A stretch of 42,478 bases of DNA from Guillardia theta CCMP2712 (lineage: Eukaryota > Protista > Cryptophyta), in contig NW_005434611.1 of the NCBI RefSeq assembly GCF_000315625.1, positions 382,046 to 424,523 on the forward strand. The letters are read 5' to 3'. The translations under genes were made by a program, and so were the position numbers. The notes under the pieces are model-generated. The model was not told where the DNA came from and did not search any database. It saw only the letters and a list, made by a program, of their open reading frames with translations. Positions 2,519 to 26,638 of this stretch are shown piece after piece (the stretch's first letter is position 1; each line of letters begins with the position of its first letter).

Positions 2519-3889
2519 GGACCAGTGGAGAGAAAACCGGGAGAAGGAGAAGGAGAAGGAGAAGGATCAAATCAGGTGTAGAAACTGCCGCGAGGGAGAG
2601 GAAGTGATACAAGATGATACAGAACCAAGTTAGAGAATGCGCTACACAATGAGGAGCTGACCATTGCGGTGGACCTTTCCTTCGGGGAGGGAGATTACGA
2701 TAGGTGAGGAGCATGAAGGGAGGGGTGCAAGGGAGGTGGCTGGGGAGGGGAGAGGAGGAAGAGAAGGAGCTGTGCTTGACTTGTAGCGGTAGAGGACGTT
2801 CGAGCCTTTCAAAGCAGCTCTGCTACTGCTACAGCTACATGAAGGACTATGAGAAGCCTCCCAGCTTCCACCTCACCTCATACACTGGTTGCCTCCTCCT
2901 CCTCCTCCTCCTCCTGCTCCTTCTCCTCCTTCTCTCCCTCGCATCGCCACGTCATTTCGCTGAAACTGCAGCACAGCTGAGGTGCAACAGCATCTCTCCA
3001 AGCGAGGCAGCGACAAATGGATCATTCACCGACATCAAGAGGTTGGAAGTTTAAGAATCACTCTCCTCCTCCTCCTCCTCGGAGGGAGGGAGGAAGGGAG
3101 GGACGGAGGGACGGAGCCTGGAACCTTCCCTCCCTCCCTCCCTCCCTCCCTCCCTCGAAGCTTCTCGTCTCCTCTTCTTTCTCACTGGACCTCAGGACAT
3201 CCGAACTGTCTTCAAAGATCGCCTGCAGGACCTCATCTTCCTCTCTCCGGACTCCCCTAACGTCCTTGAAACCATTGAGCCGGGCAAGGTCAGCGCTCAA
3301 CCTACCTCTCTCTTCCTCTTCCAAAACCACCACCGCCACCTCCTCGTCCTCGTCCTGCCGCTCTCGCTTGACTTCCTTTCACCCTAGCACCTCACGCTTT
3401 ATCGCAGATCTACGTCATCGGGGGGATCGTGGATCGAACGGTGCAGAAAGGCATGTCGCTGACGAAGTGGGAGAAGCAAGCCACAGCGAGCGGAGAGGTG
3501 AAGCGAGCTGGAGATGAAGTCATTCGATCAGCCCGGCTGCCTATCAACGAGTATGTCTCGCGAGATGTGCAGGTGCTGTGACTGTCCTTCCCTCTCTTCT
3601 CTTTCCCTTCGCTTCTCGACCTCTCCCTCCTTGCCCTCCTTCTTCCTTGTCTGACCTCCTCCTAGGGCCGCGGACACGTTCTCAACATCAACGTCGTCTT
3701 CCATGTGCTGGTGGAATTCACAAGGACGCGAGACTGGAAGCAAACGCTCACGGAGGCGTTCGATAAACTTTATCCCATCCGGTGAGTGAGCAGGACGAGG
3801 CAGCAGCAGCTGACTTGACCTCCAGTACTGCGAGGAGCAAGAGGGAGAAATCTTCACCATCGTCCACGACCGACACCAGCGTTCTGTAG
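2519..3889 (+). CDS. TRM10: Trm10-family tRNA (guanine-9-N1) methyltransferase, multi-exon; 5' end probably in the gap
   Basis: Stitching GT-AG exons gives LTIAVDLSF...RSSLSKQLCYCYS...FHLTSY, KRGSDKWIIHRH, DLIFLSPDSPNVLETIEPGK, IYVIGGIVDRTVQKGMSL, SARLPINEYV and VLNINVVFHVL...DWKQTL, the Trm10 SPOUT motifs in the correct order. Stop TAG at 3887-3889. Confidence 0.88.
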
Positions 3890-16225: not shown

Positions 16226-22464
<6,239 letters not shown>

Positions 22465-22564
22465 NNNNNNNNNNNNNNNNNNNNNNNNNNNNNNNNNNNN
22501 NNNNNNNNNNNNNNNNNNNNNNNNNNNNNNNNNNNNNNNNNNNNNNNNNNNNNNNNNNNNNNNN
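22465..22564. other. Assembly gap (100 N)
   Basis: N run inside the retroelement cluster. Confidence 1.
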
Positions 22565-23762
22565 GCGTCTGGGTGCCAGCAGTGCTGATTCTTTTCGGGC
22601 TTGTGTTTTGTGTGTGTTTGTGCAGCTTCTCGCTGTGGACTGTGTGCCTGCCGGTTCAGCTTGTTCATGCTTTGTTTTGCTTGAGGCACTTTTTACCTTC
22701 TGCCAGTAAATCCTATACCCCTCCATGCCGCACTTTTTACCTTCTGCCAGTAAATCCTATAGCAGCATGTTGCAGCGTCTGAGAAGATTCGCAAACATCG
22801 CGCTGCATATGCCATGACTACTCCTCCTCGAGCGTTCATCCCTCTTGCCATCTCGACGGACGGTATAGGATTTACTGGCAGAAGGTAAAACGGTACCCTG
22901 CATCCTGACACCCTCCGCTTCATCTGGTATCTCGCGGACATCATTGCTCAGCGCTCAATGCCTCTTGAGGATGCGGCGTTTGGTCGGCACTTCGTGCCTG
23001 ATGACGGACCTGCTGCTGAGGTCTTGGCTCGCAAACGCGCCGCCACCTATCAGCGCCTCACCATGCAGCTGACGCTGGAGGCGCTCTTGTCTGGTGCGAG
23101 GCGCATGACGCCCTTGCGGGCGCAAGCACTTCTCGAGCCAGAGGACAGCTCCTCCTCGGACTTTGTCGAGTCGCCCGAGGAGTCTTCGCCGGAGGTCTCC
23201 GACTCCGATGGGGGACACCCTTCGAGTGGCCCCGACGATCGGCGCGGAGCTGGCGAGGCGTCTCCGTCCCTCACTGTGACGTCGGGTGCCTCCGGAGAGC
23301 TCGACACCACTGGGGTGCTTGCTGCTGGTCCGAGCTCGCCTGCTTCCTCCCCGGCATCGGTCGGGTCACGCCGGTCCTTGGGCATTGCCGCGGCGTCGCC
23401 GCCGTCACGGGCGGCTACCACTGACTTGGCTACCGCTGACTCGGAGGCTAGCGAGGAGGACTACCTCGAGCGGTACCGTGTTCCTGCGTCCAGCCTCCCT
23501 CCGTCCGCTGCCCCAGGCGGACCCCCGGGCAACGCCGGCTCCTTGTCGGCGGCTGCCCTTTCTCCGTCCGCGGCCGCCCGCTTTGTGGCGGCAGCGGACG
23601 TCTCGACTGACAGTGGTCAGTCGGCTGCCTCCGGGTATCGCGTCTAAGGGATTTTCTTCCTCCTGCTTGCTCCTGCTGCTTGTTGCTTGATTGCTTGACC
23701 CTTAGGCTGCTTGTCGGTACGGTCTGCGCGGCTTCGCGCTTGGGCTGGCGCTGCCGCGTCTG
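22565..23762 (+). mobile_element. Two 3' ends (22565-22717, 22728-22765) plus an RLE/tail/partial-UTR segment carrying a 25-nt antisense tip insert
   Basis: Matches the reverse complement of 16411-17490. SGYRV* at 23647. The UTR breaks at GCGTCTG (23762). Confidence 0.9.
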
Positions 23763-23765
23763 AAG

Positions 23766-26638
23766 TATAGGATTTACTGGCAGAAGATAAAAAGTGCCTC
23801 AAGCAAAACAAAGAAGGAACAAGCTGAACCGGCAGGCACACAGTCCACAGCGAGAAGCTGCACAATCACACACAAAACACAAGCCCGAAAAGAACCAGCA
23901 CTGCTGGCACCCAGACGCGGCAGCGCCAGCCCAAGCGCGAAGCCGCGCAGACAAGCAGCCTAAGGGTCAAGCAATCAAGCAACAAGCAGCAGGAGCATGC
24001 AGGAGGAAGAAAATCCCTTAGACGCGATACCCGGAGGCAGCCGACTGACCACTGTCAGTCGAGACGTCCGCTGCCGCCACAAAGCGGGCGGCCGCGGACG
24101 GAGAAAGGGCAGCCGCCGACAAGGAGCCGGCGCTGCCCGGGTGTCCGCCTGGGGCAGCGGACGGAGGGAGGCTGGACACATGAACACGGTACCGCTCGAG
24201 GTAGTCCTCCTCGCTAGCCTCCGAGTCAGCGGTAGCCAAGTCAGTGGTAGCCGCCCGTGACAGCGGCGACGCCGCGGCAATGCCCAAGGACCGGCGTGAC
24301 CCGACCGATGCCGGGGAGGAAGCAGGCGAGCTCGGACCAGCAGCAAGCACCCCAGTGGTGTCGAGCTCTCCGGAGGCACCCGACGTCACAGTGAGGGACG
24401 GAGACGACGGAGACGCCTCGCCAGCTCCGCGCCGATCGTCGGGGCCACTCGAAGGGTGTCCCCCATCGGAGTCGGAGACTCCTCGGGCGACTCGACAAAG
24501 TCCGAGGAGGAGCTGTCCTCTGGCTCGAGAAGTGCTTGCGCCCGCAAGGGCGTCATGCCCGCAAGGGCGTCATGCGCCTCGCACCAGACAAGAGCGCTTC
24601 CAGCGTCAGCTGCATGGTGAGGCGCTGATAGGACCTCAGCAGCAGGGCCGTCATCAGGCACAAAGTGCCGACCAAACGCCGCATCCTCAAGAGGCATTGA
24701 GCGCTGAGCAATGATGTCCGCGAGATACCAGATGAAGCGGAGGGTGTCAGGATGCAGGGTACCGTCCGTCGAGATGGCAAGAGGGATGAACGCTCGAGGA
24801 GGAGTAGTCATGGCATATGCAGCGCGATGTTTGCGAATCTTCTCAGACGCTGCAAGGTTGACCTCCCCCCACTTGGTCAGGTCGGCAGAGCTACCAATGT
24901 AAGGTATAGGATGTAAGGGTGGACCAACGTCACGTCCGCCATCAAGCCCTCGTACTGCTCGGACCCTCGATCGCGGATTCCAGGAATGTGGATATCGCCC
25001 TTCATCTTGCGGCCATGAGGATGGGAGGGTACCTGCCGTCGAGAACGAGGATCCCCCACTGTATCGATGACGCTCTGAAGACCAGCTTCGTTCAGCATCG
25101 ACCGAATCGTACGAGTAAGGTTGTCATGCGCCGTGGGAAGCTTGGAGGATCGGCGTTTGCAGGTCTGGAGATGATGTGCAGCAACGGAGGGATCGAGCTC
25201 GCGCTGACATCCATCACATTTCGTCGGACACTGGCAGATCGGCATGCCATGGAGATAGCAGTCGAGCATCTGAGCATAGCGGTGCGGGAAGGCCTTGAGG
25301 GGGTAGTAGCTCGAGACTCGCATCGGAGAGTGGCTCAGGTCTCGCTCAGGAAAATGAGCGAAGATGGTAGACTGCAAGACCCTATCCTGCGACTTGAGCG
25401 AGTGTGTCCTGCGGCTGTGCAAGGTGAGGATATCACGCTGCTGATCGGTCAGCGCAGCGCGAGCATGCACATGGCGAGGGAAGACGCGCATGACAAGAGG
25501 AGTCACATTTCGCTGCGCAGGGGGAGGAATGAAGTGCTCATGAGACGAGTCGACGAGAGCGCGCAAACCAGGGATGTGTACCACAGATGCCGGGGGGCGT
25601 CCTGCGTCATCAGGCACAGCAGCCGGGGCAGGTGGGATCGCCGCGCCATCTGCAGCCGGTGCAGGAGCCTTGACACGACGGTAGAGGATCGCTCCAGCAT
25701 TATGAACGAAGTCGTGCGCCTCAACGAAGAAGGTCGCCAGAGGATGCTTCTGGGCACGGAGAGATCTCGAGCAGTGAACGTCCAGGCTATGAGGAGAGGG
25801 CAAGGTCCGGGACATGGGCTGGTCAGAGTACCAAGCGAGGAAGCGAGCGATAGCCGTATAGTAAACAGCGGGGTGTAGACCCTCAGAGGGCGTGAACTCG
25901 TCCCCTCCCCGACTATGCGGAAGCTCCCGCTTGAACCTCGCAAACTCTAGCAGGTCGGGATGCGCGGCGAGGTACTGCGAGGAAGGCCAGCGGTGGTATT
26001 TCTCAAGCGCCAGGTGGACAGAGAGGTCAAAGCGACGAATCTGTGATTGGACCCGCGGGAGAAACGGAGAAGACCCCTGGAGGAAGAAGCGCAGCTTCTG
26101 GAGATGGCTCGCCCTCACCAGCGTCTTGAACATGAAGCCATGCTGGACGAGCCCGAGCTTCGAGAGCTCTTCGTTGAGGGTAGAAACCTTCGCTCGGAGC
26201 TGACTAGCATGAAATCCATCCGTGCCGATAGGCAGGCCGCCAAGTGTAATCCCGCCAGTGACGACCTCGAAGTGAAGAAGTTGAGTCTTGAGACGGCGCT
26301 TAAGGCTCTTCTTCAGCTGCGAGAGATCAGGGTGTTGATGCCAGGAGCTTGTGTTTTGTGTGTGTTTGTGCAGCTTCTCTCTAGCTTCAGATCAGCTAAC
26401 ATGTACTTCTTCATAGCGGACGTAGCTGCAACGGCATCCTCGAGTGGACCGACAAGCACGACGTTGTCAGCATAGGCCAAGACTCGAACAGAGGGAAAAG
26501 CTCTGCGATATGGAGGAGCAGGGGGTGGATACTGTGGCAGAAAAATACGCTGGAGGGGACATCGCCCTGACAGACGCCCGAGGTACACTGAACGGAGGCT
26601 GACTGACTTTTGTGAAAGAGTCGAAGGTCAGCAGAGTC
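23766..26638 (-). mobile_element. 5'-truncated copy with a complete 3'UTR and several small indels and inserts
   Basis: Starts on the + strand with tataggatttactggcagaag. Full UTR 23766-24017, then tail, RLE, CCHC and RT thumb through YADN (about 26470). Confidence 0.92.

Follow-up and report, generated by a model that had tools for sequence, protein, structure and literature searches.

How short can a product of retrotransposition become and still be recognized as one? Truncation at the 5′ end during target-primed reverse transcription (TPRT) is the textbook mechanism by which retrotransposons without long terminal repeats (non-LTR elements) lose length. A locus of the cryptophyte Guillardia theta CCMP2712, in which a non-LTR element has repeatedly been interrupted by very small pieces of its own 3′ end, allows the lower limit of this process to be considered. 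The stretch analysed, referred to as the window, comprises 42,478 nucleotides (nt) (G000:C63:382046-424523; contig NW_005434611.1 of an 87-Mb genome in 669 contigs), and positions are counted from its first nucleotide. Three micro-inserts in the window are, with a probability that we put at about 0.8, retrotransposition products of the resident R2-like element, made by copying no more than the final 6-32 nt of the RNA.

Between 14.6 and 28.3 kb, the window was found to be a mosaic made up of pieces of a single repeat, which lie in either orientation. Window copies of the element were joined into a mapping reference (REF) of 3,756 nt, which contains a single open reading frame (ORF) with more than 1,164 codons as well as a 3′ untranslated region (UTR) of ~264 nt, and terminates in ...CTTCTGCCAGTAAATCCTATA without a poly(A) tail. 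The copies have a common 3′ end, 5′ ends cut to every length, and no terminal repeats. The 3′ tip of the element reads ...CAGTAAATCCTATA, and all three micro-inserts end there. In the genome, the 21-nt tip is present 420 times and forms roughly one cluster per contig, and insertions of the element are almost confined to nests of its own copies. Tip matches define about one nest of 5-30 kb per contig, for example at 692-706 kb of C5 and 557-571 kb of C10 (C2, C3, C6, C7, C9, C10, C12, C13, and C14, cited below, are likewise contigs of G. theta genome G000). Two copies in the window, A and B, host the micro-inserts.

All three micro-inserts were confirmed to be real. As the initial annotation had described, CATG, 38 nt, and CATG lie at 22724-22769, CGGTA, 25 nt, and CGGTA at 22861-22895, and ATGTAAGG, TATAGG, and ATGTAAGG at 24897-24918, each string being found exactly at these positions. 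Alignment to sister copies (from the window, C3, C6, C10, and C14) revealed that the sequences are identical apart from net insertions of 42, 30, and 14 nt. That each insert breaks sequence which is intact in sister copies, and that the element's extreme 3′ end is part of each, was also borne out: the intact target sites occur 136, 147, and 118 times in the genome for inserts 1, 2, and 3 (118-147 times overall), and the matches to the tip extend over 32, 27, and 6-8 nt. In the 38 nt of insert 1, CC and GCAG enclose a stretch of 32 nt that matches the final 32 nt of the element exactly. Insert 2 may alternatively be read as a 27-nt antisense tip at 22864-22890, since its terminal TA can be assigned either to the tip or to the target, and insert 3 as 8 nt of tip (ATCCTATA, minus strand) with a 6-nt duplication. 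Thus, the micro-inserts have 0-4 extra bases at either junction, flanking duplications of 3-8 nt, and either orientation, and micro-insert 2 creates a stop codon in the host ORF. The junction strings of the three inserts have one genomic occurrence each; together with the many intact sites, these unique junctions indicate that each event occurred in place, in the resident copy, rather than being passed on from a source element that already bore the mark. Neither the exact junction of insert 2 nor the 21-nt tip was matched in scans of metagenomes. No matches to the 21-nt tip are expected in shuffled sequence, and chance is negligible for inserts 1 and 2. Among the ~47 small insertions of 4-14 nt described below, a 6-mer match to the tip, counted in both orientations, would be expected ~0.02 times, and an 8-mer match far more rarely.

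A catalogue was made of all insertions relative to REF for which both flanks are contiguous in the target, in 13 nests covering ~250 kb. The catalogued inserts did not derive from random positions of the element: among 42 independent inserts of 15-300 nt, 34 have the tail core GTAAATC 2-15 nt from the 3′ boundary and two further inserts are tails of a diverged subfamily, so that 36 of 42 are tip-anchored tail fragments. The probability that a random fragment of the element includes the GTAAATC core is below 8%. Orientation relative to the host copy was evenly divided (17:17), and target duplications in the 34 clean events were mostly 2-9 nt long (median, 5 nt; range, 0-12 nt). The 3′ junctions often carry 3-10 extra bases, such as GCAG, ACT, TCCA, or (TA)5. 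Clean short examples elsewhere include 11 nt with a 4-nt duplication, 15 and 19 nt (C3), 29 nt (C14), 31 nt (C7), and 32 nt (C12). Fragments ending in CCTATA measure 8, 9, 13, 15, 19, 27, 29, 29, 30, 31, 31, 32, 32, 39, 50 ... 1,217 nt; with all tip variants included, 128 tail fragments, which run from 15 to more than 1,200 nt and share one terminal core, have a median length of ~65 nt. Genome-wide, 850 tails contain at least 17 nt of the tip, 663 of these reach 37 nt, and up to 187 lack the next 20 nt; the upper bound for the 17-36-nt class is ~190, and perhaps ~100 when small indels are allowed for. The proposal in the initial annotation that such micro-insertions are made routinely is borne out by these numbers, as ~27% of the 128 tail fragments are no longer than 39 nt and up to 187 of the 850 genomic tails are short. 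Of the 47 insertions that measure 4-14 nt, no more than about four appear to derive from the tip. As most insertions below 15 nt cannot be assigned to the tip, insert 3 rests on less evidence than the other two.

Several target sites were used more than once. Insert 2 has the same site (REF 2737-2743), orientation, and 3′ junction as a 613-nt insertion on C13, and the site and orientation of insert 3 (REF 2583-2591) are common to a 30-nt tip insertion on C10 and a ~12-nt tip insertion on C9. An 89-nt tail (C6) and the tail at 22565-22717, of at least 153 nt, likewise lie in the region of insert 1 (REF 2630-2645), and REF 2440-2447 is common to a 33-nt insertion (C7) and a 773-nt insertion (C9). 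The sites of inserts 2 and 3 are thus shared with insertions in other nests that measure 30 to at least 153 nt, and that of insert 1 possibly so; the sharing of sites with longer insertions indicates that the same machinery made both the micro-inserts and the longer ones. The target consensus is weak, with a pyrimidine bias at duplication positions 2-3 only. Most target copies extend over no more than the 3′ half of the element, and for this reason the recurrence of sites falls short of strong significance and is to be taken as suggestive.

The predicted protein points to the kind of machinery involved. The RVT_1 domain was matched just under the Pfam cut-off (E=1.5e-6 to 1.9e-6), and an exhaustive protein search yielded 757 relatives, of which 12 homologues matching through to the C-terminal region (23-34% identity) were used for an alignment and a profile. 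The best matches of this profile among solved structures were avian and silkworm R2 proteins (1.2e-13 to 3.6e-4; 9nl3 with 1.2e-13, 9dou, and 8gh6), and L1 ORF2p reached only E ~0.2. A CxxC...H...C motif, a GD...DVT block, and a K..KH / F.PL....G block are conserved in the alignment, and C763, C766, H778, C782, G836-D837, and D857 are invariant or nearly so. The C-terminal block is colinear with the CCHC and nuclease region of avian R2 (residues 988-1130), a weak match with a conditional E of 6e-7 and an independent E of 0.11. No Exo_endo_phos match, indicative of an apurinic/apyrimidinic endonuclease (APE), was found in any of the 12 aligned homologues, and Pfam gave nothing in the N-terminal 200 residues, where the zinc-finger/Myb DNA-binding domain of R2 proper was sought. 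Single-sequence searches of the PDB returned no matches, and NCBIfam only a chance-level match to group II reverse transcriptases (RT). Judged from its predicted protein, the element is an R2-like, single-ORF non-LTR retrotransposon with an RT, a CCHC motif, and a putative restriction-like nuclease of the PD..D..K type. An assignment to R2 proper was rejected, since the element has inserted at 40 or more different positions within copies of itself, in either orientation, and not at one site in the 28S ribosomal RNA (rRNA) gene. A literature search found no paper on Guillardia nuclear retrotransposons.

The view of the initial annotation that the inserts bear the signature of TPRT is supported by their anchoring at the 3′ terminus, by the short target duplications, and by a target that is intact in more than 100 sister copies. 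From the anchoring at the tip only, we infer that complementary DNA (cDNA) synthesis was primed by the nicked target strand on the 3′ end of the RNA. Synthesis would then halt almost at once, often just after a tract of five uridines (U5) located 27-32 nt from the end. The short cDNA would be joined to the far side of a staggered second nick, either through a 1-3-nt microhomology or by non-templated addition, and gap filling would yield the target duplication.

The start points of the fragments cluster near the U5 tract. Of the 128 start points, 14 lie in REF 3725-3731, at the corresponding T5 run or just beyond it and 27-32 nt from the tip, and fragments of 22-25 nt are absent from the 128. 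It is conceivable, though we regard it as rather doubtful, that what survives in the nests is a natural archive of TPRT starts at which an R2-like enzyme failed, comprising a discrete post-U5 class (27-32 nt) and runs of tandem micro-tips. If so, either the enzyme would have a built-in early checkpoint or stutter at initiation, or ~30-nt 3′-terminal RNA fragments would serve as regular templates; neither has been described for an R2-like element in vivo in the literature searched. The possible early-stop hot spot merits a bench test.

Some observations weigh against the reading of the micro-inserts as TPRT products, or against parts of it. The patch at 26348-26377 in copy B is an antisense internal tail fragment, which is not anchored at the tip and replaces host sequence: ~30 nt of the ORF have given way to 30 nt of 3′ UTR (REF ~3638-3670), with no duplication and with microhomology of a few bases at both ends. 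This patch looks like templated repair rather than TPRT, and thus not every short patch in the window fits the TPRT model. Insert 1 lies ~160-200 nt from a scaffold gap of 100 N, and insert 3 is identified by 6-8 nt in a setting where most other 4-14-nt nest insertions are not tip-like. The stop proposed at the U5 tract was read from 13 nests after the fact, and RNA folding gave no supported structure that would explain it: the last 152 nt fold no better than shuffled sequences (z = +0.86), and an alignment of 18 tails yielded a weak RNA consensus (-10.75 kcal/mol) with one compensatory pair. Finally, the nuclease and RT activities are predictions from sequence.

Products of the same appearance would arise if TPRT proceeded from a template that was already short, with the polymerase running off the 5′ end of a processed or degraded 3′-terminal RNA of ~15-35 nt. 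Apparently non-templated bases at several 5′ junctions (CC in insert 1 and TTT in an insertion on C7) agree with such a course, as the R2 polymerase has been reported to add non-templated bases at template run-off (PMC2718515), and so does the discrete 27-32-nt class. Tandem short tails a few bases apart resemble end-to-end template jumps, and for the short retropseudogenes of humans a model based on truncated RNA has been put forward (PMC2831318). However, the 2-nt microhomologies with the target that were seen at several other 5′ junctions (C10, C12, and C14) fit the annealing of an unfinished cDNA equally well, and 5′-truncated junctions of R2 and R1 were found to contain either 1-5-nt microhomologies or non-templated bases (PMC2718515). 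The tandem micro-tips lean toward run-off with a template jump and the microhomologies toward an abort, which the DNA sequence cannot separate; on balance, a template that was short from the outset appears unlikely.

Breaks in a nest might have been patched at the DNA level from neighboring tails, by a microhomology-mediated or polymerase-theta-type process involving no RNA. Tails are present within a few hundred bases of every site, many 4-14-nt insertions have no assigned origin, and the internal patch at 26348-26377, with its two microhomologies, is what such a process would leave; yet a DNA template has no special end, and 36 of the 42 inserts nevertheless stop at the 3′ terminus, give or take a few bases. 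The staggered 4-8-nt duplications and the sites shared with long insertions further point to nicking by the element itself, and we consider repair a very unlikely source of the three inserts, although, to judge from the patch, it may also occur in the nests. Trimming of once-long inserts by internal deletion also appears very unlikely. Deletions do occur in the copies (copy B has lost 15 nt at REF 2630-2644, and 160 nt of the target are missing in metagenome contig L051), but the trimming would have to end exactly at the boundary of the 5′ duplication in dozens of independent events. The same low credence is given to the idea that insert 3 alone is nothing more than a tandem duplication of 8 nt filled with random bases; small duplications whose filler has no assignable source are present, but insert 3 matches the tip over 6-8 nt and has its site and orientation in common with the tip insertions on C10 and C9. 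As for an artefact of assembly or sequencing in a repetitive, gapped scaffold region, insert 1 is close to the gap at 22466-22565, and nests of nearly identical repeats pose difficulties for assembly. This possibility is scarcely tenable in view of more than 30 analogous clean events in 12 other nests and of L051, an independent Illumina contig with a 99%-identical element that also has short tail fragments. The target duplications count against an artefact as well, as the initial annotation had argued, since chimeric joins make none.

The arrangement of the features around the micro-inserts is summarized in Table 1. The 5′ part of host copy A ends at the scaffold gap, and insert 1 lies only 9 nt downstream of another tail junction.

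Table 1. Host copies, tail fragment, and micro-inserts in the window (positions in window coordinates).
Feature	Position	Strand	Remarks
Host copy A, 5′ part; RT up to start of nuclease region	20000..22464	+	REF 1-2461; RVT_1; 99% identical to P0001
3′ tail fragment of at least 153 nt, end ...CCTATA	22565..22717	+	In copy A at ~REF 2635/2636; 5′ part lost in gap
Nine nt of copy A between two tail insertions	22719..22727	+	REF 2636-2644; holds first CATG, 22724-22727
Micro-insert 1: CC + 32-nt tip (22730-22761) + GCAG	22728..22765	+	Same orientation as host; second CATG at 22766-22769
Host copy A, 3′ part	22766..23762	+	REF 2641-3610; 3′ UTR cut by copy B tip at 23766
Micro-insert 2: 27-nt tip, antisense to host	22864..22890	-	CGG(TA) duplicated at 22861-22865 and 22891-22895
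Host copy B	23766..26636	-	REF 3756 to 864; tail-to-tail in copy A 3′ UTR
Micro-insert 3: CCTATA (8 nt, ATCCTATA, with AT)	24905..24910	-	Same orientation as copy B; ATGTAAGG duplicated at 24897-24904 and 24911-24918

Short tips were often found 6-24 nt downstream of another tail, both in the window (22717/22761) and in C2, C3, C12, and L051:3280-3368; the tandem tail pair in L051 is accompanied by the 160-nt target deletion. At L046:8290-8330 (C10), the junction of two copy fragments contains three consecutive micro-tips, CCAGTAAATCC-gat, CAGTAAATC-ggg, and TGCCAGTAAATCC-gac, which have the appearance of a single event in which several starts were aborted or the enzyme jumped between templates. 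In the C5 cluster at 19539-19640 (L038:9539-9640), a 102-nt insertion contains a ~30-nt antisense tip fused to a ~57-nt sense tail, is flanked by 5-nt duplications, and resembles twin priming in which both ends were begun on the RNA 3′ end. The 15-nt deletion in copy B (window 24855 region) removed catggagggcgtcga and coincides with the hot spot that received the two tail insertions of copy A.

The last bases of the element vary between subfamilies. Across all nests, ...GTAAATC is followed by CTATA in 42 cases, CTATG in 23, CATTG in 11, CATTA in 4, and CACTA in 3. The ~45 nt upstream of this variable end (GCTTGAGGCACTTTTTACCTTCTGC-AGTAAA) are nearly invariant, even in tails that are only 80-88% identical, and this stretch is likely to be a recognition segment for the enzyme. 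A (GCA/GCT)n repeat of several hundred nt, which reads as poly-alanine, lies in the 5′ region of the element (window 19259-19996; L051:100-345). Its presence in the 99%-identical metagenome contig marks it as part of the element and not as flanking DNA.

Retrotransposition products of less than ~40 nt normally escape notice, as they carry nothing that would identify them as insertions. As this element lands in its own copies, each landing has a reference sequence, and events of 8-30 nt can be read base by base. The nests thus provide, at little cost, natural data on the positions at which an R2-like enzyme nicks and stops and on the sealing of the 5′ junction, questions that are timely with R2 enzymes under development for gene insertion. 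Such elements can also seed frame-breaking micro-insertions, which annotation would score as ordinary indels.

Short, tail-anchored products are known from other retrotransposons. Among RTE-clade elements, copies of the 3′ end only, flanked by 6-12-nt duplications, were described and attributed to interrupted reverse transcription (PMC2887409). RTE elements differ in having an APE nuclease and dispersed rather than self-nested copies, and products as tiny as those in G. theta were not reported for them (PMC2887409). The short retropseudogenes made by human L1 are likewise tail-anchored, flanked by duplications, and enriched for short products, a distribution that was explained by incomplete reverse transcription or a truncated template (PMC2831318). 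In contrast to the G. theta element, which has no poly(A) and leaves products of 6-40 nt, L1 has an APE nuclease, a poly(A) tail, ~15-nt duplications, and a published short class of up to 300 nt. In the arrangement of its copies, the element resembles the Zepp and ZeppL nests of green-algal centromeres, with about one nest per chromosome or scaffold (PMC9940879; bioRxiv 10.1101/2025.03.28.645958). ZeppL is described as being of L1 type, whereas the element described here is R2-like and belongs to a cryptophyte, and the likeness of the nests is one of distribution pattern only.

The closest parallels are with R2 and R1 in arthropod ribosomal DNA (PMC2718515 and PMC4370867), which also have a common 3′ end, 5′ truncation, microhomology or extra bases at the 5′ junction, and some extra bases at the 3′ junction. 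With R2, the G. theta element further has in common a single ORF, an RT, and, as predicted, a C-terminal CCHC motif followed by a restriction-like nuclease. Unlike R2, it inserts at many sites in its own copies and not in the 28S gene, with a weak preference for pyrimidines, and it leaves duplications of 2-9 nt, where R2 makes small deletions or duplications at one fixed site. Its protein is very diverged, with RVT_1 below the Pfam cut-off, and its length spectrum is far more skewed than those of R2 and R1, with a median of ~65 nt for an element of more than 3.7 kb. Set beside these systems, the micro-inserts are the short end of a continuous range of 5′ truncation; their novelty is modest, and the element itself is undescribed.

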